Positions 374 to 21,509 of a stretch of 64,000 bases of DNA are shown piece after piece. Below the pieces are notes generated by a model. It ran no database searches. It was given only the letters and a program-made list of their open reading frames with translations, and was not told the DNA's origin. Positions within the stretch are counted from its first letter, which is position 1. Each line of letters starts with the position of its first letter. Origin of the DNA: Piromyces finnis finn. Lineage: Eukaryota > Fungi > Neocallimastigomycota. The position numbers and the translations under genes were made by a program. Location: positions 13,208 to 77,207 of the forward strand of contig MCFH01000099.1 in assembly GCA_002104945.1 (NCBI GenBank), read 5' to 3'.

Positions 374-1649
374 TTTTATTTTTTTTTAACGGCGGCATCA
401 AATATTTTATTGTACACATTTTCATTATTATTGATAGGACTATTGGAATTGCGTTGATTGGAAAAATTTAATAGCTGGACTATGCAATTGTAATGTTTAA
501 TACGGATATCTCTAAATGTTGGACAATCTAATAACCACTCTTGCAACATGGACAGTAGTTAGGAGTTAGGACAAACTGGATCAACAAATTTAGCAGCTTT
601 TGTAACTCTAGCATCCAACTTATATCCGGTTCTTGTTTTCAATAACAGCCAGTAGAAGCCATAGACAAACTCTGGGTACTCATAATATAATTTAATAAAA
701 TCTATAGTTTTAATAATTTTATTATTGTTGATAGTATTAAGCTTTGATTGAATTTCTTTTGAGATCTTTCCAATAGAAGTTTTTAACTGCTTTAACATCT
801 CCATGCTTCTTTAATTTTTTATCAAGTGGCCTACTTGATTTGCACCATGTATATTTTTTAAATTTAAGAATGTAATTGACAAGGTGTGAGATGATACAAT
901 TTGAGTTTTTCCACTTGTTAAAGCGTCTATCCTGAGCTAATGCGCATTTGGCTAACAATAGAGGAATATTCAAATCTTTTAAACTAGAGTATAGAGATAT
1001 AAATGATACAGCTTTATGAACTTCAGCAACTTATCGTATTCCTTTGTAAACATGCTTCTGAGCAATCCTAGACCTAGCTTTATGAAACTCTGTTGATTAC
1101 TTGTAAGTTAAGTACTAACTTTTAGAAAGGAATAGGATTATTAGGATTATCTTAAGAGTTGACTTACTAAAAAAAAAAAAATGTCCTTTCAAAACCTTGT
1201 TATTAAAAACTTTAATAACTGGTTTAAGGGTCAAATTCTTATCAAATGGAATACCAAGATAGGTGTAACAATCAGTAGTTGGAATGGATTTTCTTGCTAA
1301 GTAAAATATTAGATCTTTCTTGTTCTAATTTTCTACTGATTCAGGACGTATTATCATCGTTGAATATTACTGGATACCAAATTTCATTTCATTATACAAA
1401 GTCCATTCGATAACTCTTTTTAGCAACTTTTTTAAGTATCTTCTTAATAGAGTATAAATAACTATATTATTTGCAAAAAAAGTCCACCACAGCATCGAAT
1501 GCCTCCTAAACTGACACCGAGATCTTCGTACTCTTTAAAAATATTATTAATAAAAAGATTAATAAGAATAGGAAAAAATGGGCAAGCTTGACGGACTTTT
1601 TTCTTAACATCAAAAGATTTCGAGAATTGACCAACAAATTTGACATTAG
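374..1649 (-). pseudogene. Degenerate older relic of the non-LTR element (RT to C-terminal region, with deletions and frameshifts)
   Basis: Pieces align to about 4265-5528 of the intact element with many substitutions and deletions. Broken ORFs 559-804 and 737-973 carry element peptides (YPEFVYGFYWLLLK, KCALAQ). A T-run plus aacggc(ggc)atcaaatatttt sits at 374-408. Confidence 0.9.
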
Positions 1650-1680
1650 ATATTAAATAAAAATTTACGAAAGTTGATTA

Positions 1681-1884
1681 AATATTTTTAAACTCTATTA
1701 TTAAATTAATTAAAATTATAATACGTAATTAAAAAATTAAAAATTAAAATAAAAATAAAAAAAATAGGTTTAAAGAAACACAAATGAATAAAAATTGAAT
1801 ATAATGTATTCTAGTCATTTTAATTAAAGTAAAAAAACCACTATCATACTAAAGTATAATAATTGTATTTGACTTCCAATGGGA
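1681..1884 (-). mobile_element. Diverged 3' UTR fragment of the element
   Basis: Matches the 3' UTR at 3480-3690 with scattered substitutions and ends at gacttccaatggga. Confidence 0.85.
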
Positions 1885-1922
1885 TTTTTTTTATTTTTTT
1901 TTTATTAACGGCATTAAATATT
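1885..1922 (-). mobile_element. Ultra-short 5'-truncated insertion (poly(A) plus about 16 nt of element 3' end)
   Basis: T-run plus aacggcattaaatatt between near-identical direct repeats ttccaatggga (1874-1884) and ttccaatagga (1923-1933). Confidence 0.65.
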
Positions 1923-1930
1923 TTCCAATA

Positions 1931-1933
<3 letters not shown>

Positions 1934-1972
<39 letters not shown>

Positions 1973-2634: not shown

Positions 2635-3407
2635 TTTTTTTTTTTTTTTTTTTTTTTTTTAACGGCATCAAATATTTTAAACTTTATTATTAATTTAATT
2701 AAAATTATAATACATGTAATATAAAAATTAAAATAAAATAAAAATAAAAAAAAATATGTTTAAATAAACACAAATGAATAAAAATTGGGTATAATGTATT
2801 CTAGTAATTTTAATTAAAGTAAGAAAGCCACTATCATACTAAAGTATAATAATTGTATTTGACTTCCAATGGGACACCGAGCCAAAGATCAAAATTTTGT
2901 CATGGAACAAAATTATGATCTCCATTGGTTGCGCTGGCCCTCCTGGCCTGTCTTACTGTTTCTTCAGCATTGACGCTCTTGGATGTTGCTTCAAACCTTT
3001 TGAACATTGTCCATTGCTGGCCAATAGCAAAAGGCATGATTTTGGTTAGAAGTTTCGCGGTTACCGTCAAGAATGGTGTTCCTTCATTAGTACCAGATTG
3101 AATCTGACGCTTACAAAGTTCTTTCCATTCCCTTGAATTGTAATTAATATTGTTAAAACTTCTTCCCCCAAGAAGGAATTTAAATATTTTACTGCACACA
3201 CTAGAATAATCATACACATTAGTATTCACCGGATTATTAGAATTATTACTATCATTAACTAAATTACTATCTAAATTAGAATTATTATCATCACTATTGC
3301 TATCATTACTAATATTATTATTTCTATTACTATTATTGTTATTATTACTATTGTTACTATTACTATTGTAATTATTACTATTGTTATTATTACTATTTCT
3401 ATTACTA
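2635..3407 (-). mobile_element. 5'-truncated copy C
   Basis: T-run 2635-2660, 3' UTR and ORF C-terminus up to the Asn-rich tract. It is followed by a 37-bp diverged element fragment at 3408-3444. Confidence 0.95.
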
Positions 3408-3442
3408 TCTTCGGCATTGACGCTCTTGGATGTTACTCCAAA

Positions 3443-3444
<2 letters not shown>

Positions 3445-3482
<38 letters not shown>

Positions 3483-6400
3483 GGCATCAAATATTTTAAA
3501 CTTTATTATTAATTTAATTAAAATTATAATACATGTAATAAAAAATTAAAAATAAATAAAAATAAAAAAAATATGTTTAAATAAACACAAATGAATAAAA
3601 ATTGGGTATAATGTATTCTAGTAATTTTAATTAAAGTAAGAAAGCCACTATCATACTAAAGTATAATAATTGTATTTGACTTCCAATGGGACACCGAGCC
3701 AAAGATCAAAATTTTGTCATGGAACAAAATTATGATCTCCATTGGTTGCGCTGGCCCTCCTGGCCTGTCTTACTGTTTCTTCAGCATTGACGCTCTTGGA
3801 TGTTGCTTCAAACCTTTTGAACATTGACCATTGCTGGCCAATAGCAAAAGGCATGATTTTGGTTAGAAGTTCCGCGGTTACCGTCAAGAATGGTGCTCCT
3901 TCATTAGTACCAGATTGAATCTGACGCTTACAAAGTTCTTTCCATTCCCTTGAATTGTAATTAATATTGTTAAAACTTCTTCCCCCAAGAAGGAATTTAA
4001 ATATTTTACTGCACACACTAGAATAATCATACACATTAATATTCACCGGATTATTAGAACTATTACTATCATTAACTAAATTACTATCTAAATTAGAATT
4101 ATTATCTTCACTATTGCTATCATTATTAATATTATTATTTCTATTACTACTATTGTTATTATTACTATTTCTATTATTACTATTACTACTATTGTTATTA
4201 TTACTATTGTTATTATTATTATTGTTACTATTACTATTACTGTTATTGCTATCTCTACTGACATTATCAATTTCATTATTATTGATAGGACTATTGGAAT
4301 TACGTTGACTGAAAAAATTTAATAGCTGGACTATGGAATCATAATGTTTAATACGGATATCTCTAAATGTTGGACAATCTAATAACCAATGTTTAATACT
4401 TTGATCTCCACACTTGCAACATGGACAGTAGTTAGGACAAACTGGATCAACAAATTTGGCAGCTTTGGCAACTCTAGCATCCAACTTGTATCCGCTTCTT
4501 GCTTTCAATAGCCAGTAGAAGCCATAGGCAAACTCTGGGTACTCATAACATAATTTAATAAAATCTTTAGTTTCAATAAATTTATTATCATCATAATATT
4601 GCGCTTTGATTGAATTCCCTTTGAGATCTTTCCAATAAAAGTTTTTAACTGCTTTAACATCTCCATGTTTCTTTAATTTTTTATCAAGTGTCCTACTTGA
4701 TTTGCACCACGTGTATTTTCTAAATTTAGGAATGTAATTGACAAGGTGTGAGATAATACAATTTGAGTTTTTCCATTTGTTAAAACATCTAACCTGAGCT
4801 AACGCACATTTGGCTGACAATGGAGGAATATTCAAATCTTTTGAAATAGAGTATAAAGATATAAACGATACAGCTTTATGAACTCCGGCAACCCATCGTA
4901 TTCCTTTGTTAACATGCTTCTGAGCAATCCTAGACCTAGCTTTGTTGGATCCAAGTAATGGTGCAAAGTATGAAACTCTGCTAATCACTTGAGAGTTAAG
5001 TACTAGTTTTTTGAAAGGAATAGGAATATTAGGATTTCTTAAGAATTTACTGACTGAGAAAAGTCCTTTCAAAACCTTGTTATTAAGAACTTTAATTACT
5101 GGTTTAAGGGACAGATTCTTATCAAATGGAACACCAAGATAAGTGTAGCAGTCAGTAGTTGGAATGGGTTGTCCTGCTAAGTAAAATGTTGGATCTCTCT
5201 TGTTCTGATTTTCTATTGATTCAGGACGAATCACCATCGTTGAACATTTCTGGATACCAAATTCCATTTCATTATACAAGGCCCATTCATTAACTCTTCT
5301 AAGCATCTTTTTTAAGCATCCTCTTGTTGGAGCACAAATAACTATATCATCTGCAAAAAGTCCACCACAGCATCGAGTGTCACCTAAACTGACTCCGAGA
5401 TCTTCACACTCTCTAAATATATCATTAATAAAGAGATTAAAGAGAATAGGAGAAAGAGGGCAACCTTGACGGACTCCTTTTTTCACATCAAAAGATTTCG
5501 AGAATTGTCCATCTAATTTGACATTAGCCTTAGATGTTAAATATAAATTTTTGATAAATTGTAGACTCTTACCTCGGATTCCTAAACAATCTAATTTATG
5601 GAGAATATTACCGATTGGGACTGAATCGTATGCTTTCCTGAGATCTAAAAAGGCCAAATATGTCTCTTTATTATCTAATTGACGTCTACGGCATATTTCT
5701 TGGATTGAAATGAAAAGACTGATACTTTCTTCCTTTTTTCGAAAACCAAATTGTTCAGGTCTAATGAAATTATTCTTAAGACCATATTCTGAGATTCTAG
5801 TGGTGACAATTTTGGAGATCAACTTAATACCATTATTGATAAGTGATATACCTCGATAGTTATCACAATCTGTCAAATCTCCCTTCTTAGGAATAGAAAC
5901 AATACTGGATTCATTCCATGAGTTGGGGAAATCTCCATCCCAAATACGGTTAAATAATTTAAGAATAAAATTTAAACCATGAGCATCATTATCTGAAGTA
6001 GTATTACCAGAAGAATTATTATCTGTAGCATTATTAGAATCATTACTTGATGGAACTAATGCTTTGTAAAATTCAATTGGAATACCATCCGGACCTGATG
6101 CTTTATAATTTGGAGTAGTGAGGATAGCTGACTTGACTTCATCAATACTAATATCTTGGTTGATATCCCACTCATCAAGCATAGGAAGTGAAAAACGTTT
6201 ATTCGTTGGTTCTTCATACCAATGCTCCAAATCAAGACTTACACCACTTGGATCTGATGCAAGATTTTCGAAATGATCATGCCACACATCTAGTTGTTCT
6301 TCCGTAGCAACAACTAATTCTCCATTTTTATTTTTAATTGGTTGAGCAATAAAGAAAGAATCTTTTCCAATTTTTGCAGTTTTCTTGATCCATTTCCAGG

Positions 6401-8903
6401 CCTTCTTAGGATTATGACTCTTCATATACTCACATCCTGTTTTAATCCAATGAAGATATTCTTGTTTCCTAAATTCATTACATCTTTTGTGGATGTAATC
6501 AATGAGCTTACGGTAGATTTTAATTCTTTTAATAAATTCATCTATATCATAAATTCTTTCTTTTTTAAATCTCTTATACAACTTCATTTTGATTTTTTGG
6601 AGATTAAAAATTTGTTGTGAAATATGAAATGAAGACTTTATAACATTATTTGCTGAGGTAATACTGAGCTCGTCTGCAATTGAAAAAGCAGTTGAAGTAA
6701 ACTCTTTGGAAAGTTCATCTGTAGAAACATTAGGATCGTTGAATTTTGCTGAAAGAATTTGGAATTTATTATGACTGAGAATAGATTCCTTTTCCTCAAT
6801 ACATTTTAATCTATTCCATTTCAGAATTTTCTTAGGAACATTAAAGTCATTAGAAAAATCTTCCATAGGAATAATTTTACCATTAATAAGAAGTGGCTTA
6901 TGGTCTGATACAGGATAAAAATTATTTATAAATGATCCTGAGTGAATAAGATCTTTCATCTTCGAATTGATAAGAGCATGGTCAATGTCGGAAGATTGAT
7001 CACCTCGAGTCCAAGAGATAGTCGACCCTCTAAGCGGAAGAATTTCCCAATCTCCTAATCCATTAGTTGATAACCAGTTGGATAATTTTACTTTAGACAT
7101 ATTAAAATCACCAACAAGAATCGATGGATGGGATGAATGAGTTTGTAACCACAAGCGAACTTCTAACTTTGCATGATCAACATAGATGTTGTGATGACTA
7201 TGAGGCATATAAACATTTCCAATCGAGCATTTGAATCTATTCCAGAGACTAAAAGTATAAATAGAAATAATATACTTTCCAGAGAAGTTTTCAAGTGAGG
7301 CTTGACACGAATTGTGAAAACCTAAATATAAACCTCTCATTCCTGGAACTGATTCGTCAGCTTTCTTGAAAAAGTGTCTATAGTTTCGCAAAGTAACACG
7401 ACAAGGATAATCTGTATTCGATCCAGAACCATTACCAGTTTCTTGGAAACATAAGAATAATGGTTTGAAAATAGCTGTGAAATAGCTAATACTATCTCTC
7501 TTTTCGTGATTCCACCCATTGGTGTTCCAACTAAGACAAAAAGAAAAGTTATCAGGCTTGTTGGATGAGGAAGAATCGTTGCTATTATTATTATTATTAA
7601 AGTCATCGTTATTAATGGATGATGCATCAGAGGAATAAGTAGAACTATTATTAGATGGCTGTAAAACTGAAGAACTATCAACTATTGAACTGTTATCAGA
7701 GTTGATAGAACTATTAGAATTAATTGTTGAATGTTGAGATTGAAATTGTGTTTGCTGTAGATCTGGAATATTTTCATGATGGGAAACTTGTTGAAGATCT
7801 TGTTGAAGATCTTGTTGAAGATCGGATTGTTGATGAGATTGTTGAACTGATTGTTGAAATGATTGTTGAATAGAATGTTGATGTTTATTAGAAACTAAAA
7901 TTTTACGTTTGAGAGTGGAAAAAGTGTATTTGTGATTCCTTCTACTACGAGCTGAAAAGGAAATTGAGGTAACTGAAAGTTTCTTCTTTAACATGTGTAA
8001 GATTTTAATACAATCTTTTGATGAACCATGAACCTTGACTAAGAAAAAGTGATCATTGAAAGTCTGAAAATATTTAACACTAATAACTGAATTAAATTTA
8101 TCTTCTAGAATAACCTCGAGTTTTTCCCATAGCATATTTACTGACCATGATCGAATACCACGGATAAAGAAGGAGCGAATATCATCTAAGGGGATACCAA
8201 AAGACCGGGTACCACGTCTGATATAATTCTTATCTTTAATATAAATGACTGACATGATAATTAATTCTAATTAAAAAAAATTGAATATAAAATAAATACT
8301 AATAAAAATTACAAATATAACGTATATGGAAAAAAATCTGTCTCTCTCTCTCTTCTTAAAAGTACTGGATAGTACAAAAATTGTTACGATGCTTTGTTTA
8401 AAGTTTCTTTTTTTTTTTTTTTTTTTGAATTCTAGTTGTAAATTTTCTTTAAAAATTCTAGTTTTGGTTTGTTGTTAGTAAATTCGATTCGCTTTTTGAC
8501 ACTAAAATTGTTTGACTTTACTTTTCATTAAATATTTAAATTGGTAAAAAATTTGAATCAAGAATGTCGACACCAGAAAGCTTGTGAATAGTATTTTTAC
8601 ATGATGTAGAGTGAATCAGTCTCTTACAAGAAACAATACAACAATAGCTACATGAATATAAAAATACAATGCAAATGCTAAAGTTGACTACATTGGATTC
8701 TTACAAGAGAAGAGTAGTACTACATGAATACATGAATAAAAGAAAAAATACAGCAACAAAATGTATTACTCTTCTAATTAAATACTATACAAACTTACCT
8801 GAATATCAAACATTCAACTTATTCATCAAATACTTAATTCGATGAATAAAATGTTTTTTAATCGCTCAGTACCATGAGCTTAGTCCTAATAATTTTCCCT
8901 TGA

Positions 8904-8907
<4 letters not shown>
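3445..8907 (-). mobile_element. Non-LTR (LINE-like, APE-type) retrotransposon, element 1; intact ORF, 5' monomers absent
   Basis: Poly(A) as T-run 3445-3479, 237-nt 3' UTR, 1512-aa ORF. The 5' UTR stops at cccttgaagac, exactly where the monomers begin in elements 2 and 3. Confidence 0.97.
3717..8255 (-). CDS. Single-ORF retrotransposon protein: putative RRM, APE endonuclease, reverse transcriptase, CCHC knuckle
   Basis: APE motifs SWNTNG, FQET, GDFN, DIDH, SDH. RT motifs GPDGIP, YRGISL, QFGF, FLDLRKAYDSV, GVRQGCPLSP, FADD, YLGV. Knuckle CPCCKCGDQSIKHWLLDC. Confidence 0.97.
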   Translation of the reverse strand: MSVIYIKDKNYIRRGTRSFGIPLDDIRSFFIRGIRSWSVNMLWEKLEVILEDKFNSVISVKYFQTFNDHFFLVKVHGSSKDCIKILHMLKKKLSVTSISFSARSRRNHKYTFSTLKRKILVSNKHQHSIQQSFQQSVQQSHQQSDLQQDLQQDLQQVSHHENIPDLQQTQFQSQHSTINSNSSINSDNSSIVDSSSVLQPSNNSSTYSSDASSINNDDFNNNNNSNDSSSSNKPDNFSFCLSWNTNGWNHEKRDSISYFTAIFKPLFLCFQETGNGSGSNTDYPCRVTLRNYRHFFKKADESVPGMRGLYLGFHNSCQASLENFSGKYIISIYTFSLWNRFKCSIGNVYMPHSHHNIYVDHAKLEVRLWLQTHSSHPSILVGDFNMSKVKLSNWLSTNGLGDWEILPLRGSTISWTRGDQSSDIDHALINSKMKDLIHSGSFINNFYPVSDHKPLLINGKIIPMEDFSNDFNVPKKILKWNRLKCIEEKESILSHNKFQILSAKFNDPNVSTDELSKEFTSTAFSIADELSITSANNVIKSSFHISQQIFNLQKIKMKLYKRFKKERIYDIDEFIKRIKIYRKLIDYIHKRCNEFRKQEYLHWIKTGCEYMKSHNPKKAWKWIKKTAKIGKDSFFIAQPIKNKNGELVVATEEQLDVWHDHFENLASDPSGVSLDLEHWYEEPTNKRFSLPMLDEWDINQDISIDEVKSAILTTPNYKASGPDGIPIEFYKALVPSSNDSNNATDNNSSGNTTSDNDAHGLNFILKLFNRIWDGDFPNSWNESSIVSIPKKGDLTDCDNYRGISLINNGIKLISKIVTTRISEYGLKNNFIRPEQFGFRKKEESISLFISIQEICRRRQLDNKETYLAFLDLRKAYDSVPIGNILHKLDCLGIRGKSLQFIKNLYLTSKANVKLDGQFSKSFDVKKGVRQGCPLSPILFNLFINDIFRECEDLGVSLGDTRCCGGLFADDIVICAPTRGCLKKMLRRVNEWALYNEMEFGIQKCSTMVIRPESIENQNKRDPTFYLAGQPIPTTDCYTYLGVPFDKNLSLKPVIKVLNNKVLKGLFSVSKFLRNPNIPIPFKKLVLNSQVISRVSYFAPLLGSNKARSRIAQKHVNKGIRWVAGVHKAVSFISLYSISKDLNIPPLSAKCALAQVRCFNKWKNSNCIISHLVNYIPKFRKYTWCKSSRTLDKKLKKHGDVKAVKNFYWKDLKGNSIKAQYYDDNKFIETKDFIKLCYEYPEFAYGFYWLLKARSGYKLDARVAKAAKFVDPVCPNYCPCCKCGDQSIKHWLLDCPTFRDIRIKHYDSIVQLLNFFSQRNSNSPINNNEIDNVSRDSNNSNSNSNNNNNNNSNNNNSSNSNNRNSNNNNSSNRNNNINNDSNSEDNNSNLDSNLVNDSNSSNNPVNINVYDYSSVCSKIFKFLLGGRSFNNINYNSREWKELCKRQIQSGTNEGAPFLTVTAELLTKIMPFAIGQQWSMFKRFEATSKSVNAEETVRQARRASATNGDHNFVP

Positions 8908-8934
<27 letters not shown>

Positions 8935-9162
8935 AACGGCATCAAATATTTTAAACTTTATTATTAATTTAATTAAAATTATAATACATGTAATAAAAAA
9001 TTAAAAAATAAAAATAAAAATAAAAAAAATATGTTTAAATAAACACAAATGAATAAAATTTGGGTATAATGTATTCTAGTAATTTTAATTAAAGTAAGAA
9101 AGCCACTATCATACTAAAGTATAATAATTGTATTTGACTTCCAATGGGACACCGAGCCAAAG

Positions 9163-9199
<37 letters not shown>

Positions 9200-9635
9200 G
9201 GCATCAAATATTTTAAACTTTATTATTAATTTAATTAAAATTATAATACATGTAATAAAAAATTAAAAATAAATAAAAATAAAAAAAAAATATGTTTAAA
9301 TAAACACAAATGAATAAAAATTGGGTATAATGTATTCTAGTAATTTTAATTAAAGTAAGAAAGCCACTTTTTCCTTTAGAAAAGGAGAGGATATAATAAA
9401 AAGGTTTCAAAAAAAAAAAAAAAAAGGACAGAAAAAAACTATACTTTTTCCTTTTTTAATCCACTCTTGATTAAATCATCATCTGGTGGCATCCTCTCCT
9501 TTCTTTGTGAATAAAGCAATATTTACACCACAAAAATATAAATATTATGCCAAAGATCAAAATTTTGTCATGGAACAAAATTATGATCTCCATTGGTTGC
9601 GCTGGCCCTCCTGGCCTGTCTTACTGTTTCTTCAG

Positions 9636-9637
<2 letters not shown>
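8908..9637 (-). mobile_element. 5'-truncated copy D, interrupted by the 9169-9548 insertion
   Basis: T-run 8908-8934 and 3' UTR to 9168. It resumes at 9549 with duplicated gccaaagatcaaa and runs to cttcagca. Confidence 0.9.
9169..9548 (-). mobile_element. Chimeric insertion: poly(A), 172 nt of element 3' UTR, 180 nt of non-element sequence
   Basis: Flanked by exact 13-bp TSD gccaaagatcaaa (9156-9168 and 9549-9561). Segment 9369-9548 matches nothing in the three intact elements. Confidence 0.85.
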
Positions 9638-9680
<43 letters not shown>

Positions 9681-10114
9681 GGCATCAAATATTTTAAACT
9701 TTATTATTAATTTAATTAAAATTATAATACATGTAATATAAAAATTAAAATAAAATAAAAATAAAAAAAATATGTTTAAATAAACACAAATGAATAAAAA
9801 TTGGGTATAATGTATTCTAGTAATTTTAATTAAAGTAAGAAAGCCACTATCATACTAAAGTATAATAATTGTATTTGACTTCCAATGGGACACCGAGCCA
9901 AAGATCAAAATTTTGTCATGGAACAAAATTATGATTTCCATTGGTTGCGCTGGCCCTCCTGGCCTGTCTTACTGTTTCTTCAGCATTGACGCTCTTGGAT
10001 GTTGCTTCAAACCTTTTGAACATTGACCATTGCTGGCCAATAGCAAAAGGCATGATTTTGGTTAGAAGTTCCGCGGTTACCGTCAAGAATGGTGTTCCTT
10101 CGTTAGTACCAGAT

Positions 10115-10117: not shown

Positions 10118-10152
<35 letters not shown>

Positions 10153-10388: not shown

Positions 10389-13300
10389 TCATGGAACAAA
10401 ATTATGATCTCCATTGGTTGCGCTGGCCCTCCTGGCCTGTCTTACTGTTTCTTCAGCATTGACGCTCTTGGATGTTGCTTCAAACCTTTTGAACATTGAC
10501 CATTGCTGACCAATAGCAAAAGGCATGATTTTGGTTAGAAGTTCCGCGGTTACCATCAAGAATGGTGTTCCTTCGTTAGTACCAGATTGAATCTGACGCT
10601 TACAAAGTTCTTTCCATTCCCTTGAATTGTAATTAATATTGTTAAAACTTCTTCCCCCAAGAAGGAATTTAAATATTTTACTGCACACACTAGAATAATC
10701 ATACACATTAATATTCACCGGATTATTAGAACTATTACTATCATCAACTAAATTACTATCTAAATTAGAATTATTATCATCACTATTGCTATCATTACTA
10801 ATATTATTATTTCTATTATTGTTATTATTACTATTGTTATTATTAATATTATTACTATTACTATTACTGTTATTGCTATCTCTGCTGATATTAACACATT
10901 CATTATTATTGATAGGACTATTGGAATTACGTTGACTGAAAAAATTTAATAGATGGACTATAGAATCATAATGTTTAATACGGATATCTCTAAATGTTGG
11001 ACAATCTAATAACCAATGTTTAATACTTTGATCTCCACACTTGCAACATGGACAGTAGTTAGGACAAACTGGATCAACAAATTTAGCAGCTTTGGCAACT
11101 CTAGCATCCAACTTGTATCCGCTTCTTGCTTTCAATAGCCAGTAGAAGCCATAGGCAAACTCTGGGTACTCATAACATAATTTAATAAAATCTTTAGTTT
11201 CAATAAATTTATTATCATCATAATATTGCGCTTTGATTGAATTCCCTTTGAGATCTTTCCAATAAAAGTTTTTAACTGCTTTAACATCTCCATGTTTCTT
11301 TAGTTTTTTATCAAGTGTCCTACTTGATTTGCACCACGTGTATTTTCTAAATTTAGGAATGTAATTGACAAGGTGTGAGATAATACAATTTGAGTTTTTC
11401 CATTTGTTAAAACATCTAACCTGAGCTAACGCACATTTGGCTGACAATGGAGGAATATTCAAATCTTTTGAGATAGAGTATAAAGATATAAACGATACAG
11501 CTTTATGAACTCCGGCAACCCATCGTATTCCTTTGTTAACATGCTTCTGAGCAATCCTAGACCTAGCTTTGTTGGATCCAAGTAATGGTGCAAAGTATGA
11601 AACTCTGCTAATCACTTGTGAGTTAAGTACTAGTTTTTTGAAAGGAATAGGAATATTAGGATTTCTTAAGAATTTACTGACTGAGAAAAGTCCTTTCAAA
11701 ACCTTGTTATTAAGAACTTTAATTACTGGTTTAAGGGACAAATTCTTATCAAATGGAACACCAAGATAAGTGTAGCAGTCAGTAGTTGGAATGGGTTGTC
11801 CTGCTAAGTAAAATGTTGGATCTCTCTTGTTCTGATTTTCTATTGATTCAGGACGAATCACCATCGTTGAACATTTCTGGATACCAAATTCCATTTCATT
11901 ATACAAGGCCCATTCATTAACTCTTCTAAGCATCTTTTTTAAGCATCCTCTTGTTGGAGCACAAATAACTATATCATCTGCAAAAAGTCCACCACAGCAT
12001 CGAGTGTCACCTAAACTGACTCCGAGATCTTCACACTCTTTAAATATATCATTAATAAAGAGATTAAAAAGAATAGGAGAAAGTGGGCAACCTTGACGGA
12101 CTCCTTTCTTCACATCAAAAGATTTCGAGAATTGTCCATCTAATTTGACATTAGCCTTAGATGTTAAATATAAATTTTTGATAAATTGTAAACTCTTACC
12201 TCGGATTCCTAAACAATCTAATTTATGGAGAATATTACCGATAGGGACTGAATCGTATGCTTTCCTGAGATCTAAAAAGGCCAAATATGTCTCTTTATTA
12301 TCTAATTGACGTCTACGGCATATTTCTTGGATTGAAATGAAAAGACTGATACTTTCTTCCTTTTTTCGAAAACCAAATTGTTCAGGTCTAATGAAATTAT
12401 TCTTAAGACCATATTCTGAGATTCTAGTGGTGACAATTTTGGAAATCAACTTAATACCATTATTGATAAGTGATATACCTCGATAGTTATCACAATCTGT
12501 CAAATCTCCCTTCTTAGGAATAGAAACAATACTGGATTCATTCCATGAGTTGGGGAAATCTCCATCCCAAATACGGTTGAATAATTTAAGAATAAAATTT
12601 AAACCATGAGCATCATTATCTGAAGTAGTATTACCAGAAGAATTATTATCTGTAGCATTATTAGAATCATTACTTGATGGAACTAATGCTTTGTAAAATT
12701 CAATTGGAATACCATCCGGACCTGATGCTTTATAATTTGGAGTAGTGAGGATAGCTGACTTGACTTCATCAATACTAATATCTTGGTTGATATCCCACTC
12801 ATCAAGCATAGGAAGTGAAAAACGTTTATTCGTTGGTTCTTCATACCAATGCTCCAAATCAAGACTTACACCACTTGGGTCTGATGCAAGATTTTCGAAA
12901 TGATCATGCCACACATCTAGTTGTTCTTCCGTAGCAACAACTAATTCTCCATTTTTATTTTTAATTGGTTGAGCAATAAAGAAAGAATCTTTTCCAATTT
13001 TTGCAGTTTTCTTGATCCATTTCCAGGCCTTCTTAGGATTATGACTCTTCATATACTCACATCCTGTTTTAATCCAATGAAGATATTCTTGCTTCCTAAA
13101 TTCATTACATCTTTTGTGGATGTAATCAATGAGTTTACGGTAGATTTTAATTCTTTTAATAAATTCATCTATATCATAAATTCTTTCTTTTTTAAATCTC
13201 TTATACAACTTCATTTTGATTTTTTGAAGATTAAAAATTTGTTGTGAAATATGAAATGAAGACTTTATAACATTATTTGCTGAAGTAATACTGAGCTCGT

Positions 13301-14882
13301 CTGCAATTGAAAAAGCAGTTGAAGTAAACTCTTTGGAAAGTTCATCTGTAGAAACATTAGGATCGTTGGATTTTGCTGAAAGTATTTGGAATTTATTATG
13401 ACTGAGAATAGATTCCTTTTCCTCAATACATTTTAATCTATTCCATTTCAGAATTTTCTTAGGAACATTAAAGTCATTAGAAAAATCTTCCATAGGAATA
13501 ATTTTACCATTAATAAGAAGTGGCTTATGGTCTGATACAGGATAAAAATTATTTATAAATGATCCTGAGTGAATAAGATCTTTCATCTTCGAATTGATAA
13601 GAGCATGGTCAATGTCGGAAGATTGATCACCTCGAGTCCAAGAGATAGTAGACCCTCTAAGCGGAAGAATTTCCCAATCTCCTAATCCATTAGTTGATAA
13701 CCAGTTGGATAATTTTACTTTAGACATATTAAAATCACCAACAAGAATCGATGGATGGGATGAATGAGTTTGTAACCACAAGCGAACTTCTAACTTTGCA
13801 TGATCAACATAGATGTTGTGATGACTATGAGGCATATAAACATTACCAATCGAGCATTTGAATCTATTCCAGAGACTAAAAGTATAAATAGAAATAATAT
13901 ACTTTCCAGAGAAGTTTTCAAGTGAGGCTTGACATGAATTGTGAAAACCTAAATATAAACCTCTCATTCCCGGAACTGATTCGTCAGCTTTCTTGAAAAA
14001 GTGTCTATAGTTTCGCAAAGTAACACGACAAGGATAATCTGTATTCGATCCAGAACCATTACCAGTTTCTTGGAAACATAAAAATAATGGTTTGAAAATA
14101 GCTGTGAAATAGCTAATACTATCTCTCTTTTCGTGATTCCACCCATTGGTGTTCCAACTAAGACAAAAAGAAAAGTTATCAATCTTGTTGGATGAGGAAG
14201 AATCGTTGCTATTATTATTATTATTAAAGTCATCGTTATTAATGGATGATGCATCAGAGGAATAAGTAGAACTATTACTAGATGGCTGTGAAACTGAAGA
14301 ACTATCAACTATTGAACTGTTATCAGAGTTGATAGAGCTATTAGAATTAATTGTTGAATGTTGAGATTGAAATTGTGTTTGCTGTAGATCTGGAATATTT
14401 TCATGATTGGAAACTTGTTGAAGATCTTGTTGAAGATCTAGTTGAAGATCGGATTGTTGATGAGATTGTTGAACTGATTGTTGAAATGATTGTTGAATAG
14501 AATGTTGATGTTTATTAGAAACTAAAATTTTACGTTTGAGAGTGGAAAAAGTGTATTTGTGATTCCTTCTACTACGAGCTGAAAAGGAAATTGAGGTAAC
14601 TGAAAGTTTCTTCTTTAACATGTGTAAGATTTTAATACAATCTTTTGATGAACCATGAACCTTGACTAAGAAAAAGTGATCATTGAAAGTTTGAAAATAT
14701 TTAACACTAATAACTGAATTAAATTTATCTTCTAGAATAACCTCGAGTTTTTCCCATAGCATATTTACTGACCATGATCGAATACCACGGATAAAGAAGG
14801 AGCGAATATCATCTAAGGGGATACCATAAGACCGGGTACCACGTCTGATATAATTCTTATCTTTAATATAAAGGACTGACAT
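10389..14882 (-). CDS. Retrotransposon protein, element 2 (1497 aa, intact)
   Basis: Same APE, RT and CCHC motifs as element 1 and nearly identical to it. Confidence 0.97.
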   Translation of the reverse strand: MSVLYIKDKNYIRRGTRSYGIPLDDIRSFFIRGIRSWSVNMLWEKLEVILEDKFNSVISVKYFQTFNDHFFLVKVHGSSKDCIKILHMLKKKLSVTSISFSARSRRNHKYTFSTLKRKILVSNKHQHSIQQSFQQSVQQSHQQSDLQLDLQQDLQQVSNHENIPDLQQTQFQSQHSTINSNSSINSDNSSIVDSSSVSQPSSNSSTYSSDASSINNDDFNNNNNSNDSSSSNKIDNFSFCLSWNTNGWNHEKRDSISYFTAIFKPLFLCFQETGNGSGSNTDYPCRVTLRNYRHFFKKADESVPGMRGLYLGFHNSCQASLENFSGKYIISIYTFSLWNRFKCSIGNVYMPHSHHNIYVDHAKLEVRLWLQTHSSHPSILVGDFNMSKVKLSNWLSTNGLGDWEILPLRGSTISWTRGDQSSDIDHALINSKMKDLIHSGSFINNFYPVSDHKPLLINGKIIPMEDFSNDFNVPKKILKWNRLKCIEEKESILSHNKFQILSAKSNDPNVSTDELSKEFTSTAFSIADELSITSANNVIKSSFHISQQIFNLQKIKMKLYKRFKKERIYDIDEFIKRIKIYRKLIDYIHKRCNEFRKQEYLHWIKTGCEYMKSHNPKKAWKWIKKTAKIGKDSFFIAQPIKNKNGELVVATEEQLDVWHDHFENLASDPSGVSLDLEHWYEEPTNKRFSLPMLDEWDINQDISIDEVKSAILTTPNYKASGPDGIPIEFYKALVPSSNDSNNATDNNSSGNTTSDNDAHGLNFILKLFNRIWDGDFPNSWNESSIVSIPKKGDLTDCDNYRGISLINNGIKLISKIVTTRISEYGLKNNFIRPEQFGFRKKEESISLFISIQEICRRRQLDNKETYLAFLDLRKAYDSVPIGNILHKLDCLGIRGKSLQFIKNLYLTSKANVKLDGQFSKSFDVKKGVRQGCPLSPILFNLFINDIFKECEDLGVSLGDTRCCGGLFADDIVICAPTRGCLKKMLRRVNEWALYNEMEFGIQKCSTMVIRPESIENQNKRDPTFYLAGQPIPTTDCYTYLGVPFDKNLSLKPVIKVLNNKVLKGLFSVSKFLRNPNIPIPFKKLVLNSQVISRVSYFAPLLGSNKARSRIAQKHVNKGIRWVAGVHKAVSFISLYSISKDLNIPPLSAKCALAQVRCFNKWKNSNCIISHLVNYIPKFRKYTWCKSSRTLDKKLKKHGDVKAVKNFYWKDLKGNSIKAQYYDDNKFIETKDFIKLCYEYPEFAYGFYWLLKARSGYKLDARVAKAAKFVDPVCPNYCPCCKCGDQSIKHWLLDCPTFRDIRIKHYDSIVHLLNFFSQRNSNSPINNNECVNISRDSNNSNSNSNNINNNNSNNNNNRNNNISNDSNSDDNNSNLDSNLVDDSNSSNNPVNINVYDYSSVCSKIFKFLLGGRSFNNINYNSREWKELCKRQIQSGTNEGTPFLMVTAELLTKIMPFAIGQQWSMFKRFEATSKSVNAEETVRQARRASATNGDHNFVP

Positions 14883-15527
14883 GATAATAAATTCTAATTA
14901 AAAAATATTGAATATAAAATAAATACTAATAAAAATTACAAATATAACGTATATGGAAAAAAATCTGTCTCTCTCTCTCTTCTTAAAAGTACTGGATAGT
15001 ACAAAAATTGTTACGATGCTTTGTTTAAAGTTTCTTATTTTTTGAATTCTAGTTGTAAATTTTCTTTAAAAATTCTAGTTTTGGTTTGTTGTTAGTAAAT
15101 TCGAATCGCTTTTTGACACTAAACTTGTTTGACTTTACTTTTCATTAAATATTTAAATTGGTAAAAAATTTGAATCAAGAATGTCGACACCAGAAAGCTT
15201 GTGAATAGTATTTTTACATGATGTAGAGTGAATCAGTCTCTTACAAGAAACAATACAACAATAGCTACATGAATATAAAAGTACAATGCAAATGCTAAAG
15301 TTGACTACATTGGATTCTTACAAGAGAAGAGTAGTACTACATGAATACATGAGTAAAAGAAAAAATACAGCAACAAAATGTATTACTCTTCTAATTAAAT
15401 ACTATACAAACTTACCTGAAAAATCAAACATTCACTTATTCATCAAATACTTAAATTTGATGAATAAAATGTTTTTTAATCGCTCAGTACCATGAGCTTA
15501 GTCCTAATAATTTTCCCTTGAAGACTA

Positions 15528-15718
15528 ACCAAGCATCCATTGCGCAATGCTTGGATTTAATTCTTTCTACTCTCTCAGTACCATGAGCATGAGTAGACCC
15601 CTTGAGAAATTACATTTATTAAATAAATGAAGGCACATTCCTAAGAGGGCACCAAGCATCCATTGCGCAATACTTGGATTTAATTCTTTCTACTCTCTCA
15701 GTACCATGAGCATGAGTA
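15528..15718 (-). repeat. 5' UTR ~123-bp monomers of element 2 (second monomer split by element 3; remainder at 21378-21446)
   Basis: accaagcatccattgcgcaat... recurs at 15528 and 15651. Confidence 0.9.
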
Positions 15719-15919
15719 TTTTTTTTTTTTTTTTTTTTAACGGCATCAAATATTTTAAACTTTATTATTAATTTAATTAAAATTATAATACATGTAATAT
15801 AAAAAGTTAAAAATAAAATAAAATAAAAAAAAAAACATGTTTAAATAAACACAAATGAATAAAAAATGGGTATAATGTATTCTAGTAATTTTAATTAAAG
15901 TAAGAAAGCCACTATTATA

Positions 15920-18900
15920 CTAAGGTATAATAATTGTATTTGACTTCCAATGGGACACCGAGTCAAAGATCAAAATTTTATCATGGGAAAAATTATGATC
16001 TCCATTGGTTGCGCTGGCCCTCCTGGCCTGTCTTACTGTTTCTTCAGCATCGACGCTCTTGGATGTTGCTTCAAACCTTTGGAACATTGACCATTGCTGG
16101 CCAATAGCAAAAGGCATGATTTTGGTTAGAAGTTCCGCGGTTACCGTCAAGAATGGTGTTACTTCATTAGTACCAGATTGAATCTGACACTTGCAAAGTT
16201 CTTTCCATTCCCTTGAATCGTAATTGATATTGTTAAAACTTCTTCCCCCAAGAAGGAATTTAAATATTTTACTGCACACACTAGAATAATCATACACATT
16301 AATATTCACCGGATTATTAGAACTATTACTATCATTAACTAAATTACTATCTAGATTAGAATTATTATCATCACTATTGCTATCATTACTAATATTATTA
16401 TTTCTATTATTGTTATTATTACTATTGTTACTATTACTATTGTTATTACTACTATTGTTACTATTACTATTAATGTTATTACTATCTCTACTGATATTAA
16501 CATTTTCATTATTATTGATAGGACTATTGGAATTACGTTGACTGAAAAAATTTAATAGCTGGACTATGGAATCATAATGTTTAATACGGATATCTCTAAA
16601 TGTTGGACAATCTAATAACCAATGTTTAATACTTTGATCTCCACACTTGCAACATGGACAGTAGTTAGGACAAACTGGATCAACAAATTTAGCAGATTTG
16701 GCAACTCTAGCATCCAACTTGTATCCGCTTCTTGCTTTCAATAGCCAGTAGAAGCCATAGGCAAACTCTGGGTACTCATAACATAATTTAATAAAATCTT
16801 TAGTTTCAATAAATTTATTATCATCATAATATTGCGCTTTGATTGAATTCCCTTTGAGATCTTTCCAATAAAAGTTTTTAACTGCTTTAACATCTCCATG
16901 TTTCTTTAATTTTTTATCAAGTGTCCTACTTGATTTGCACCACGTGTATTTTCTAAATTTAGGAATGTAATTGACAAGGTGTGAGATAATACAATTTGAG
17001 TTTTTCCATTTGTTAAAACATCTAACCTGAGCTAACGCACATTTGGCTGACAATGGAGGAATATTCAAATCTTTTGAAATAGAGTATAAAGATATAAACG
17101 ATACAGCTTTATGAACTCCGGCAACCCATCGTATTCCTTTGTTAACATGCTTCTGAGCAATCCTAGACCTAGCTTTGTTGGATCCAAGTAATGGTGCAAA
17201 GTATGAAACTCTACTAATCACTTGTGAGTTAAGTACTAGTTTTTTGAAAGGAATAGGAATATTAGGATTTCTTAAGAATTTACTGACTGAGAAAAGTCCT
17301 TTCAAAACCTTGTTATTAAGAGCTTTAATTACTGGTTTAAGGGACAGATTCTTATCAAATGGAACACCAAGATAAGTATAGCAATCAGTAGTTGGAATGG
17401 GTTGTCCTGCTAAGTAAAATGTTGGATCTCTCTTGTTCTGATTTTCTATTGATTCAGGACGAATCACCATCGTTGAACATTTCTGGATACCAAATTCCAT
17501 TTCATTATACAATGCCCATTCATTAACTCTTCTAAGCATCTTTTTTAAGCATCCTCTTGTTGGAGCACAAATAACTATATCATCTGCAAAAAGTCCACCA
17601 CAGCATCGAGTGTCACCTAAACTGACTCCTAGATCTTCGCACTCTCTAAATATATCATTAATAAAGAGATTAAAGAGAATAGGAGAAAGAGGGCATCCTT
17701 GACGGACTCCTTTCTTCACATCAAAAGATTTCGAGAATTGTCCATCTAATTTGACATTAGCCTTAGATGTTAAATATAAATTTTTGATAAATTGTAGACT
17801 CTTACCTCGGATTCCTAAACAATCTAATTTATGGAGAATATTACCGATTGGGACTGAATCGTATGCTTTCCTGAGATCTAAAAAGGCCAAATATGTCTCT
17901 TTATTATCTAATTGACGTCTACGGCATATTTCTTGGATTGAAATGAAAAGACTAATACTTTCTTCCTTTTTTCGAAAACCAAATTGTTCAGGTCTAATGA
18001 AATTATTCTTTAAACCATATTCTGAGATTCTAGTGGTGACAATTTTGGAAATCAACTTAATGCCATTATTGATAAGTGATATACCTCGATAGTTATCACA
18101 ATCTGTCAAATCTCCCTTCTTAGGAATAGAAACAATACTGGATTCATTCCATGAGTTGGGGAAATCTCCATCCCAAATACGGTTGAATAATTTAAGAATA
18201 AAATTTAAACCATGAGCATCATTATCTGAAGTAGTATTACCAGAAGAATTATTATCTGTAGCATTATTAGAATCATTACTTGATGGAACTAATGCTTTGT
18301 AAAATTCAATTGGAATACCATCCGGACCTGATGCTTTATAATTTGGAGTAGTGAGGATAGCTGACTTGACTTCATCAATACTAATATCTTGGTTGATATC
18401 CCACTCATCAAGCATAGGAAGTGAAAAACGTTTATTCGTTGGTTCTTCATACCAATGCTCCAAATCAAGACTTACACCACTTGGGTCTGATGCAAGATTT
18501 TCGAAATGATCATGCCACACATCTAGTTGTTCTTCCGTAGCAACAACTAATTCTCCATTTTTATTTTTAATTGGTTGAGCAATAAAGAAAGAATCTTTTC
18601 CAATTTTTGCAGTTTTCTTGATCCATTTCCAGGCCTTCTTAGGATTATGACTCTTCATATACTCACATCCTGTTTTAATCCAATGAAGATATTCTTGCTT
18701 CCTAAATTCATTACATCTTTTGTGGATGTAATCAATGAGTTTACGGTAGATTTTAATTCTTTTAATAAATTCATCTATATCATAAATTCTTTCTTTTTTA
18801 AATCTCTTATACAACTTCATTTTGATTTTTTGAAGATTAAAAATTTGTTGTGAAATATGAAATGAAGACTTTATAACATTATTTGCTGAAGTAATACTGA

Positions 18901-20488
18901 GCTCGTCTGCAATTGAAAAAGCAGTTGAAGTAAACTCTTTGGAAAGTTCATCTGTAGAAACATTAGGATCGTTGGATTTTGCTGAAAGTATTTGGAATTT
19001 ATTATGACTGAGAATAGATTCCTTTTCCTCAATACATTTTAATCTATTCCATTTCAGAATTTTCTTAGGAACATTAAAGTCATTAGAAAAATCTTCCATA
19101 GGAATAATTTTACCATTAATAAGAAGTGGCTTATGGTCTGATACAGGATAAAAATTATTTATAAATGATCCTGAGTGAATAAGATCTTTCATCTTCGAAT
19201 TGATAAGAGCATGGTCAATGTCGGAAGATTGATCACCTCGAGTCCAAGAGATAGTAGACCCTCTAAGCGGAAGAATCTCCCAATCTCCTAATCTATTAGT
19301 TGATAACCAGTTGGATAATTTTACTTTAGACATATTAAAATCACCAACAAGAATCGATGGATGGGATGAATGAGTTTGTAACCACAAGCGAACTTCTAAC
19401 TTTGCATGATCAACATAGATGTTGTGATGACTATGAGGCATATAAACATTACCAATCGAGCATTTGAATCTATTCCAGAGACTAAAAGTATAAATAGAAA
19501 TAATATACTTTCCAGAGAAGTTTTCAAGTGAGGCTTGACATGAATTGTGAAAACCTAAATATAAACCTCTCATTCCCGGAACTGATTCGTCAGCTTTCTT
19601 GAAAAAGTGTCTATAGTTTCGCAAAGTAACACGACAAGGATAATCTGTATTCGATCCAGAACCATTACCAGTTTCTTGGAAACATAAAAATAATGGTTTG
19701 AAAATAGCTGTGAAATAGCTAATACTATCTCTCTTTTCGTGATTCCACCCATTGGTGTTCCAACTAAGACAAAAAGAAAAGTTATCAGGCTTGTTGGATG
19801 AGGAAGAATCGTTGCTATTATTATTATTATTAAAGTCATCGTTATTAATGGATGATGCATCAGAGGAATAAGTAGAACTATTACTAGATGGCTGTGAAAC
19901 TGAAGAACTATCAACTATTGAACTGTTATCAGAGTTGATAGAGCTATTAGAATTAATTGTTGAATGTTGAGATTGAAATTGTGTTTGCTGTAGATCTGGA
20001 ATATTTTCATGATTGGAAACTTGTTGAAGATCTTGTTGAAGATCTAGTTGAAGATCGGATTGTTGATGAGATTGTTGAACTGATTGTTGAAATGATTGTT
20101 GAATAGAATGTTGATGTTTATTAGAAACTAAAATTTTACGTTTGAGAGTGGAAAAAGTGTATTTGTGATTCCTTCTACTACGAGCTGAAAAGGAAATTGA
20201 GGTAACTGAAAGTTTCTTCTTTAACATGTGTAAGATTTTAATACAATCTTTCGATGAACCATGAACCTTGACTAAGAAAAAGTGATCATTGAAAGTCTGA
20301 AAATATTTAACACTAATAACTGAATTAAATTTATCTTCTAGAATAACCTCGAGTTTTTCCCATAGCATATTTACCGACCATGATCGAATACCACGGATAA
20401 AGAAGGAGCGAATATCATCTAAGGGGATACCATAAGACCGGGTACCACGTCTGATATAATTCTTGTCTTTAATATAAAGGACTGACAT
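15920..20488 (-). CDS. Retrotransposon protein, element 3 (1522 aa, frameshift-extended C-terminus)
   Basis: All catalytic motifs are intact. It ends NGDHNFSHDKIL...IIIP instead of NGDHNFVP. Confidence 0.97.
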   Translation of the reverse strand: MSVLYIKDKNYIRRGTRSYGIPLDDIRSFFIRGIRSWSVNMLWEKLEVILEDKFNSVISVKYFQTFNDHFFLVKVHGSSKDCIKILHMLKKKLSVTSISFSARSRRNHKYTFSTLKRKILVSNKHQHSIQQSFQQSVQQSHQQSDLQLDLQQDLQQVSNHENIPDLQQTQFQSQHSTINSNSSINSDNSSIVDSSSVSQPSSNSSTYSSDASSINNDDFNNNNNSNDSSSSNKPDNFSFCLSWNTNGWNHEKRDSISYFTAIFKPLFLCFQETGNGSGSNTDYPCRVTLRNYRHFFKKADESVPGMRGLYLGFHNSCQASLENFSGKYIISIYTFSLWNRFKCSIGNVYMPHSHHNIYVDHAKLEVRLWLQTHSSHPSILVGDFNMSKVKLSNWLSTNRLGDWEILPLRGSTISWTRGDQSSDIDHALINSKMKDLIHSGSFINNFYPVSDHKPLLINGKIIPMEDFSNDFNVPKKILKWNRLKCIEEKESILSHNKFQILSAKSNDPNVSTDELSKEFTSTAFSIADELSITSANNVIKSSFHISQQIFNLQKIKMKLYKRFKKERIYDIDEFIKRIKIYRKLIDYIHKRCNEFRKQEYLHWIKTGCEYMKSHNPKKAWKWIKKTAKIGKDSFFIAQPIKNKNGELVVATEEQLDVWHDHFENLASDPSGVSLDLEHWYEEPTNKRFSLPMLDEWDINQDISIDEVKSAILTTPNYKASGPDGIPIEFYKALVPSSNDSNNATDNNSSGNTTSDNDAHGLNFILKLFNRIWDGDFPNSWNESSIVSIPKKGDLTDCDNYRGISLINNGIKLISKIVTTRISEYGLKNNFIRPEQFGFRKKEESISLFISIQEICRRRQLDNKETYLAFLDLRKAYDSVPIGNILHKLDCLGIRGKSLQFIKNLYLTSKANVKLDGQFSKSFDVKKGVRQGCPLSPILFNLFINDIFRECEDLGVSLGDTRCCGGLFADDIVICAPTRGCLKKMLRRVNEWALYNEMEFGIQKCSTMVIRPESIENQNKRDPTFYLAGQPIPTTDCYTYLGVPFDKNLSLKPVIKALNNKVLKGLFSVSKFLRNPNIPIPFKKLVLNSQVISRVSYFAPLLGSNKARSRIAQKHVNKGIRWVAGVHKAVSFISLYSISKDLNIPPLSAKCALAQVRCFNKWKNSNCIISHLVNYIPKFRKYTWCKSSRTLDKKLKKHGDVKAVKNFYWKDLKGNSIKAQYYDDNKFIETKDFIKLCYEYPEFAYGFYWLLKARSGYKLDARVAKSAKFVDPVCPNYCPCCKCGDQSIKHWLLDCPTFRDIRIKHYDSIVQLLNFFSQRNSNSPINNNENVNISRDSNNINSNSNNSSNNNSNSNNSNNNNNRNNNISNDSNSDDNNSNLDSNLVNDSNSSNNPVNINVYDYSSVCSKIFKFLLGGRSFNNINYDSREWKELCKCQIQSGTNEVTPFLTVTAELLTKIMPFAIGQQWSMFQRFEATSKSVDAEETVRQARRASATNGDHNFSHDKILIFDSVSHWKSNTIIIP

Positions 20489-21131
20489 GATAATAAATTC
20501 TAATTAAAAATATTGAATATAAAATAAATACTAATAAAAATTATAAATATAACGTATATGGAAAAAAAAATCTGTCTCTCTCTCTCTTCTTAAAAGTACT
20601 GGATAGTACAAAAATTGTTACGATGCTTTGTTAAAAGTTTCTTTTTTTGAATTCTAGTTGTAAATTTTCTTTAAAAATTCTAGTTTTGGTTTGTTGTTAG
20701 TAAATTCGAATCGCTTTTTGACACTAAACTTGTTTGACTTTACTTTTCATTAAATATTTAAATTGGTAAAAAATTTGAATCAAGAATGTCGACACCAGAA
20801 AGCTTGTGAATAGTATTTTTACATGATGTAGAGTGAATCAGTCTCTTACAAGAAACAATACAACAATAGCTACATGAATATAAAAATACAATGCAAATGC
20901 TAAAGTTGACTACATTGGATTCTTACAAGAGAAGAGTAGTACTACATGAATACATGAATAAAAGAAAAAATACAGCAACAAAATGTATTACTCTTCTAAT
21001 TAAATACTATACAAACTTACCTGAATATCAAACATTCAACTTATTCAACAAATACTCAATTCGATGAATAAAATGTTTTTTAATCGCTCAGTACCATGAG
21101 CTTAGTCCTAATAATTTTCCCTTAAAGACTA

Positions 21132-21377
21132 ACCAAGCATCCATTGCGCAATGCTTGGATTTAATTCTTTCTACTCTCTCAGTACCATGAGCATGAGTAG
21201 ACCCCCTTGATAAACTCCATTATTAAATAAATGAAGGCACGTTCCTAAGAGGGCACCAAGCATCCATTGCGCAATACTTGGATTTAATTCTTTCTACTCT
21301 CTCAGTACCATGAGCATGAGTAGACCCCCTTGAGAAACTACATTTATTAAATAAATGAAGGCACGTTCCCAAGAGGG
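21132..21377 (-). promoter_or_regulatory. Two tandem ~123-bp 5' UTR monomers of element 3; putative internal promoter or structured RNA leader
   Basis: Repeat starts at 21132 and 21255, and both full-length elements begin at the monomer boundary. Promoter function is inferred by analogy to rodent L1 monomers. Confidence 0.6.
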
Positions 21378-21446
21378 ATGAGCATGAGTAGACCCCCTTG
21401 AGAAACTACATTTATTAAATAAATGAAGGCACGTTCCCAAGAGGGA

Positions 21447-21509
21447 AGTACCAGATTGAATCTGACGCTTACAAAGTTCTTTCCATTCCCTTGAATTGTA
21501 ATTAATATT
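21447..21509 (-). mobile_element. Remainder of truncated copy E
   Basis: agtaccagattgaatctgacgc...attaatatt matches the ORF tail and continues the sequence interrupted at 10117. Confidence 0.9.

Follow-up and report, generated by a model that had tools for sequence, protein, structure and literature searches.

A nested, single-orientation array of a LINE in the anaerobic gut fungus Piromyces finnis

Why should copies of a long interspersed nuclear element (LINE) lie inside one another and directly against one another, all facing the same way? The question is raised by a locus of Piromyces finnis (assembly GCA_002104945.1), analyzed here within a window of 64,000 nucleotides (nt) that spans positions 13,208 to 77,207 of the forward strand of contig MCFH01000099.1. 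Positions 374-21509 of the window form a gap-free array of about 12 pieces of one LINE family, about 21 kb long, in extremely AT-rich host DNA. The observation that the array is self-nesting and of single orientation is confirmed. The best explanation, which we hold to be probable while leaving real room for others, is repeated target-primed reverse transcription of an active, abundant L1-like LINE that prefers its own or related copies as targets and enters them in the same orientation.

A preliminary description of this DNA had reported ten poly(A) tails, visible as T-runs, all on one strand and nine of them with element sequence as their left flank. All ten T-runs are present, and every copy is on the minus strand, as are all features given below. 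Element sequence does lie to the left of nine; the T-run at 374 adjoins unique flank. On the plus strand, each copy opens with its T-run and continues with AACGGCATCAAATATTTT. Nine of the runs lead into AACGGCAT(C/T)AAATATTTT, and the one at 374 leads into the variant AACGGCGGCATCAAATATTTT. The pieces were mapped against one of the copies, X8, as reference, and the junctions were then read base by base. From left to right on the plus strand the order is unique flank, A, B, t, X1, X2, Z, X3, D (with a chimera inside it), E (with X7 inside it, and X8 inside X7) and unique flank. The absence of any further copy from the rest of the window, also reported earlier, holds in a tblastn search with the open reading frame (ORF) of the element, which finds none in 21510-64000.

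The nesting is most directly seen in three insertions flanked by target-site duplications (TSDs), each of which is exact, as previously reported, and each 13 bp long. Copy X8 (15719-21377), which is full-length and measures 5,659 nt including a T-run of 20, lies in the outer 5' repeat unit of copy X7, between two occurrences of ATGAGCATGAGTA (15706-15718 and 21378-21390). X7 is itself a full-length copy, whose main part (10118-15718) resumes beyond X8 with its 5' end (21391-21446). Together with X8, it is inserted in copy E between two occurrences of AGTACCAGATTGA (10105-10117 and 21447-21459). The 3' part of E occupies 9639-10117, and its 5' end (21460-21509) is truncated 492 nt from the 3' end, after which unique flank begins (AACTTTATGC...). 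The third insert is a chimera (9169-9548) that separates the 3' part of copy D (8908-9168) from its 5' part (9562-9638) and is bounded by GCCAAAGATCAAA at 9156-9168 and 9549-9561.

For each of these nests, the insert was excised together with one copy of the TSD and the continuity of the host was checked. Without the chimera, D is gapless and equal to copy X3 at 146 of 146 bases. Without X7, E is likewise gapless, with 106 of 108 bases identical. Once X8 is removed, the outer repeat unit of X7 equals that of X8 at all 123 bases.

Two more insertions have imperfect duplications. Copy t (1885-1924) consists of a T-run and 18 nt of the 3' tip only; it is flanked by a TSD of 9-11 bp with one mismatch, CCAATGGGA (1876-1884) against CCAATAGGA (1925-1933). 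Copy A (374-1657) is old and degenerate, with 85% DNA identity and frameshifts; in it a T-run and a 23-nt 3' tip are joined to ORF sequence (reference positions ~4947 to 3687). On its two sides stands AAATTTAC(A/G)AA (364-373 and 1658-1668, within the flanks AAATTTACAA and AAATTTACGAA). This repeat is a probable TSD, which would place A at the 3' tip of fragment B. The five TSD-bounded insertions, three exact and two imperfect, are all co-oriented with their hosts.

The chimera within D is made of a T-run of 28, a LINE tail of 172 nt (9197-9368) and 180 nt of foreign sequence (9369-9548). Since the LINE tail and the foreign sequence lie within one TSD, the reverse transcriptase (RT) evidently switches templates in vivo. 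The foreign part folds well (z = -4.4) and has an internal run of 17 U; no convincing match to an Rfam family was found for it. In composition the chimera resembles template-switch chimeras, of the U6/L1 type, that have been reported for L1 (10.1101/2025.02.02.635956).

What kind of element builds such an array? At full length it measures about 5.64 kb plus the poly(A) tail, and it has a single ORF and two tandem repeat units of 123 bp at its 5' end (21132-21254 and 21255-21377 in X8). The two complete copies, X7 and X8, have one identical 5' terminus (...CCCAAGAGGG), to which X7 adds one extra base. The 5' repeat is promoter-like. Mouse L1 has monomeric 5' promoters, and the tandem 5' repeat units with one fixed transcript start here are similar to these monomers.

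Three copies retain the ORF: X3 (3717-8255, intact, 1512 amino acids), X7 (10389-14882, 1497 amino acids) and X8 (15920-20488, 1522 amino acids). The last has lost the usual stop codon and runs on for 21-22 extra codons (15920-15985), so that its product is longer than the usual length of about 1500 amino acids. The first ~125 amino acids of the ORF (amino acids 1-125; window 20117-20488) are conserved and have no Pfam match; a long linker rich in Q, S and N follows, before the endonuclease. A separate ORF1 was looked for in the 889-nt 5' leader, which contains no ORF of 60 amino acids or more.

The ORF product contains an endonuclease domain of the apurinic/apyrimidinic (APE) type (Pfam PF03372, amino acids 241-452, 28.9 bits against a cut-off of 24.5), and the same domain is present in relatives. 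An RT domain (PF00078, ~1e-35) is found in each of the three ORFs; among solved structures human L1 ORF2p is the closest to it (4e-33), compared with 3e-18 for R2. Downstream of the RT is a Cys/His motif of the CCHC kind, whose residues C1277, C1280, H1289 and C1294 are invariant in an alignment of 12 sequences (11 of them relatives), along with a weak zf-RVT match. Traits of the L1 clade are also seen in the array itself, namely T-runs of 20-40 nt, three exact 13-bp TSDs and seven 5'-truncated copies. By its domains and these insertion traits, the element classifies as an L1-like, APE-type LINE.

Recent activity is indicated by the three intact ORFs of about 1500 amino acids and by the pure T-runs of 20-40 nt. 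The element occurs at high depth in RNA sequencing runs. When 11,938 contigs of the DNA sequencing run from which this genome probably derives were aligned to X8, the summed word depth was about 350,000-700,000 over the element and about 120-200 for single-copy contigs. This suggests a family copy number in the thousands, the depth ratio not being itself a copy number. The closest proteins come from metagenome and transcriptome contigs, and an exact look-up of the three ORF products in public assemblies returned no record.

Seven of the roughly 12 pieces of the array are 3' fragments. Fragment B (1669-1884) is an old piece of the 3' untranslated region (UTR) that has no T-run, is about 8-11% diverged from the young copies and ends at CCAATGGGA, 216 nt from the 3' end. 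After copy t comes X1 (1934-2634), a T-run of 36 with the 3' 665 nt of the element; it is 5'-truncated and runs directly into the T-run of X2 with no visible TSD. X2 (2635-3407) has a T-run of 26 and the 3' 750 nt, and its 5' end is joined to fragment Z (3408-3444), a 37-nt piece located 302-341 nt from the 3' end. Z differs from the young copies at 3 of 35 nt (about 9%, as B does), and B probably continues in Z, after a gap in which 85 nt of B have been lost. Copy X3 (3445-8907) has a T-run of 35 and the whole element minus the 5' repeat units, and its 5' end abuts the T-run of D. The 5' part of D, in turn, reaches to 311 nt from the 3' end, where the T-run of E follows directly.

Two other arrangements were considered for these pieces and rejected. 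X1 is not a tandem duplicate of X2, as their 3'-UTR variants differ. Z might be taken for a displaced continuation of D, with which it has a 7-nt overlap (TGCYGAA), but its position is on the wrong side, and it mismatches at 3 of 35 nt where D has no mismatch in 146. More generally, the 3'-UTR variants differ among neighbors (X2 and E have a common variant that is absent in X1), which shows the copies to be independent insertions and not local duplications.

The most economical history that we infer begins with B and Z as one old fragment of about 340 nt. It would have been hit by t, by a block of X1 and X2 (with the loss of 85 nt of B) and by a block of X3, D and E, all within 125 nt; copy A would have landed at the tip of B before that. 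Counted in this way, the old fragment took at least three hits within 125 nt and one at its tip.

Under the explanation preferred here, new copies would land in, or directly against, resident copies of the same or a related family and in the same orientation. The junctions X1/X2, X2/Z, X3/D and D/E would most simply be insertions into the poly(A) tail of a neighbor; the TSDs of such insertions are invisible because they are made of T only. Alternatively, these junctions could be template jumps within one event. The ends of resident copies appear to be marked, in that the poly(A) tail, the region 200-450 nt before it, around a conserved GC-rich cis-element near the ORF end, and the 5' repeat would be favored. 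In the version that we prefer, the particle would be tethered to a strand-asymmetric feature of resident, transcribed copies, such as this cis-element or the open ends at promoter and terminator. Tethering of this kind would account for the clustering of copies as well as for their common orientation.

Several points weigh against this explanation. The tethering step is pure inference. Five junctions (X1/X2, X2/Z, Z/X3, X3/D and D/E) have no visible TSD, and since these are five of ten, the proof of homing extends to only about half of the events. The two blocks X1/X2 and X3/D/E have no flanking TSD, and target deletions must be assumed for them. The array was selected for being an array, and the family may account for several per cent of the genome, if not more, so an excess over chance is measurable only genome-wide. 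The right-hand flank is ordinary gene-bearing DNA with no sign of a special chromosomal domain. Finally, the junction words of this locus were recovered only in part from the DNA run.

The preliminary description had gone further and proposed an APE-type LINE that homes to its own family at freely chosen sites. The APE domain and at least five co-oriented insertions in or at the tip of copies bear out the first part; the sites are not free, and half of the junctions need no homing.

The same TSD-less junctions provide the main ground for another explanation. The RT may jump from one LINE RNA to the poly(A) end of the next, so that a single event yields a co-oriented string of pieces without TSDs, and no homing is needed there. 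At X1/X2, X3/D and D/E truncated 5' ends do directly abut full T-runs without a TSD, the 5' end of X2 carries a 37-nt piece from another position of a LINE, and the chimera shows that the RT switches templates in vivo. Three readings fit the TSD-less junctions: insertion into a poly(A) tail and a template jump, which account for them equally well, and loss of target at the 5' join. As an account of the array, template jumping seems unlikely to us. It leaves the three exact 13-bp nests, copy t and copy A unexplained, and the X1/X2 and X3/D/E blocks, together with copy t, would still have to have landed no more than 125 nt apart in one 340-nt fragment, B/Z. The divergence of Z, about 9% like that of B, is easier to reconcile with a leftover piece of the target than with a template reached by a jump. 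No TSD was found around the whole array or around copy E, as the right-flank words AACTTTATGC, ATGCTATATAC and others have no second occurrence in the window.

A further possibility is that there is no targeting at all. Insertion would then be random, hits in genes would be purged, inverted neighbors would be lost as unstable or as triggers of silencing, and co-oriented piles would survive. In a very abundant family chance nesting is not rare, and genes are present in the right half of the window. We consider this very improbable nonetheless. The insertions are very young, with exact TSDs, identical hosts and intact ORFs, which leaves little time for sorting; long AT-rich intergenic stretches of the flank are without a copy; one old fragment of 340 nt was hit four or five times; and one nick site was used twice.

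Least credible of all is an artefact of assembly or the shuffling of copies by unequal crossing-over or tandem duplication. It is true that no clean nest emerges in the left half of the array, and that a share of just 0.56 of the 31-mers sampled from 21345-21545 is present in the DNA run (roughly half of the words possible in that interval cross a junction, and contigs drop rare branches). Yet neither misassembly nor crossing-over makes exact 13-bp duplications around a unit running from poly(A) to 5' terminus with perfect host continuity, neighboring copies have different 3'-UTR variants, and the reading of Z as displaced D fails on its mismatches.

How, then, are the sites chosen? The internal junctions lie 216, 216, 228, 302, 341 and 438 nt from the 3' end, and the remaining one lies in the 5' repeat. 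No internal junction falls in the three intact ORFs of about 4.5 kb (13.6 kb in total). This count is biased, since the early targets were short 3' fragments only. The nick sites were previously described as differing every time, which does not hold: copy t and the X1 block both begin after CCAAT(G/A)GGA, and the site of the chimera is 19 nt from this shared nick site. On the priming strand the nick context is A^R only (AAA^AT, TGA^AT and GTA^GA). Such a context is far too common in the genome to act as a target, and targeting would not be set by the endonuclease. Plain T-runs were also considered as the target. They are ruled out by the 42.5-kb flank, where nine homopolymer runs of at least 20 nt (three of T and six of A) and 35 of at least 15 nt are present and free of insertions. 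A search for Rfam families in 1-24000 found none.

A conserved element at the end of the ORF may be relevant here. The last ~30 codons (3717-3810 in X3; X7 and X8 have the corresponding stretch) show conservation at synonymous sites between LINE families whose proteins have only ~50-60% of their amino acids in common. Identical codons make up 0.84-1.00 of this stretch, compared with 0.48-0.55 overall, and in three of four comparisons the stretch ranks first among all windows. It contains a small GGCC/GGCC hairpin, with compensatory changes in three relatives; the fold of the single sequence gives z = -2.4. The conservation is seen among X3, X7, X8 and the relatives L001, L002 and L004-L008, which are labels of metagenome contigs. 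To judge from its conservation the stretch is a probable 3' cis-element, and its simplest role would be that of a signal on the RNA, recognized by the RT. The internal insertion sites are grouped in its vicinity. It is conceivable, if quite unlikely in our estimate, that the cis-element is also an address on resident DNA copies, recognized as DNA or by pairing of RNA with the antisense DNA strand, which would give strand-specific homing to own and related families with loose nicks nearby; arrays could then mark chromosome domains, perhaps the centromeres of anaerobic fungi.

Beyond the window, similar junctions can be found at other loci. Contigs of the DNA run join the 5' terminus (21377) to the internal positions 18373 and 21347, and another joint connects 17713 to 15899; these joints are co-oriented nested junctions elsewhere in the genome. 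Relatives of the element were collected as 25 metagenome contigs from rumen and gut, obtained in a protein-based scan and each at most 6.3 kb long, a length that shows the surroundings of copies but not entire arrays. In 4 of the 25 (L005, L006, L008 and L013), a poly(A) tract stands just upstream of the full 5' end, and in L006 the 3' region of the host resumes directly after the poly(A). Co-oriented nesting in a different family, at ~72% DNA identity, is seen in L008 (5354-6024) and L023 (274-2065). Nesting across families at such identity weakens any model of targeting that needs long homology, for example by RNA pairing. One inverted neighbor (L024) was found among the 25 contigs. An exact scan of the metagenome contigs for the 3' tip of the element gave no match.

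Self-nesting is known from other LINEs, with Zepp/ZeppL and Cnl1 as precedents (PMC8226300, PMC3446292, PMC9942834). The earlier statement that self-inserting arrays are known only from elements with another type of endonuclease or with fixed targets does not hold, as it omitted Zepp, of Chlorella and Coccomyxa, and ZeppL, of Chlamydomonas, which are L1-clade LINEs described as targeting existing copies. Both they and the element here belong to the L1-type LINEs and carry a poly(A) tail. On each chromosome Zepp and ZeppL make up a single GC-rich cluster (PMC3446292; 10.1101/2022.06.16.496473), and for Zepp the clusters stand out as local maxima of GC content in the genome (PMC3446292). The array resembles them in this respect, its GC content being 24-33% compared with 13-27% in the flanks.

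There are also differences. Zepp and ZeppL occur strictly as one cluster per chromosome at putative centromeres, whereas the element here apparently has thousands of copies. Unlike Zepp, it is hosted by a fungus and has one ORF with no ORF1. A centromere-like arrangement with one cluster per chromosome, raised in the preliminary description, is unlikely in view of the apparent thousands of copies and the gene-bearing right flank. By its behavior, the element is best placed with the Zepp-like, self-targeting LINEs, among which it is unusually abundant and active.

Cnl1 of Cryptococcus likewise nests in itself in tandem. It belongs to the CRE clade and has a different endonuclease type: CRE-clade elements encode a restriction-enzyme-like endonuclease C-terminal to the RT and have no APE domain. 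Here, an APE domain is found on the N-terminal side. Cnl1 is also subtelomeric, adjoins telomere repeats and is 3.4 kb long, in contrast to the present APE-bearing element, whose array is internal to the contig with a gene-bearing right flank.

In mammalian L1 the TSDs are variable and the nick is TTTT/AA, compared with the constant 13-bp TSD and the A^R context here. The TSDs, and the unique DNA on both sides of the array, speak against telomere addition of the HeT-A/TART type. Targeting of tRNA genes, as in the TRE elements of Dictyostelium, finds no counterpart, as ARAGORN detects no tRNA gene in the window. Grem-LINE1 of Mucor circinelloides is also an L1-clade LINE of an early-diverging fungus; it has AP endonuclease, RT and zf-RVT domains and is confined to pericentric regions (10.1101/706580). 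Grem-LINE1 differs in being interspersed in gene-free pericentric DNA and in having a separate zinc-finger ORF1, and self-nesting is not mentioned there (10.1101/706580). A literature search turned up no description of LINE arrays in anaerobic gut fungi.

If the pattern holds genome-wide, the family would be the equivalent of Zepp in a fungus, of far greater size and active at present, with intact ORFs, expression and a copy number that may reach the thousands. One could then study in it how an APE-type LINE whose nick site is almost unspecific finds its own kind and keeps its orientation. Such arrays would account for assembly breaks in these genomes. In a phylum still lacking maps of heterochromatin and of centromeres, they are also candidate markers of one or the other.

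The array is internal to its contig, with at least 13 kb to its left and 42 kb with ordinary ORFs and genes to its right, and unique DNA borders it on both sides. Parts of the flank are present in rumen and gut sequencing runs. In the DNA run, the contig of the right flank stops at 21508, 2 nt inside E, where about 30 nt into E would be expected; a branch at this position might reflect a second allele without the array. Long low-complexity repeats with periods of 3, 6 or 9 nt are common to several places in the gene-bearing half of the window, among them 24860-25060 and 61660-61920.

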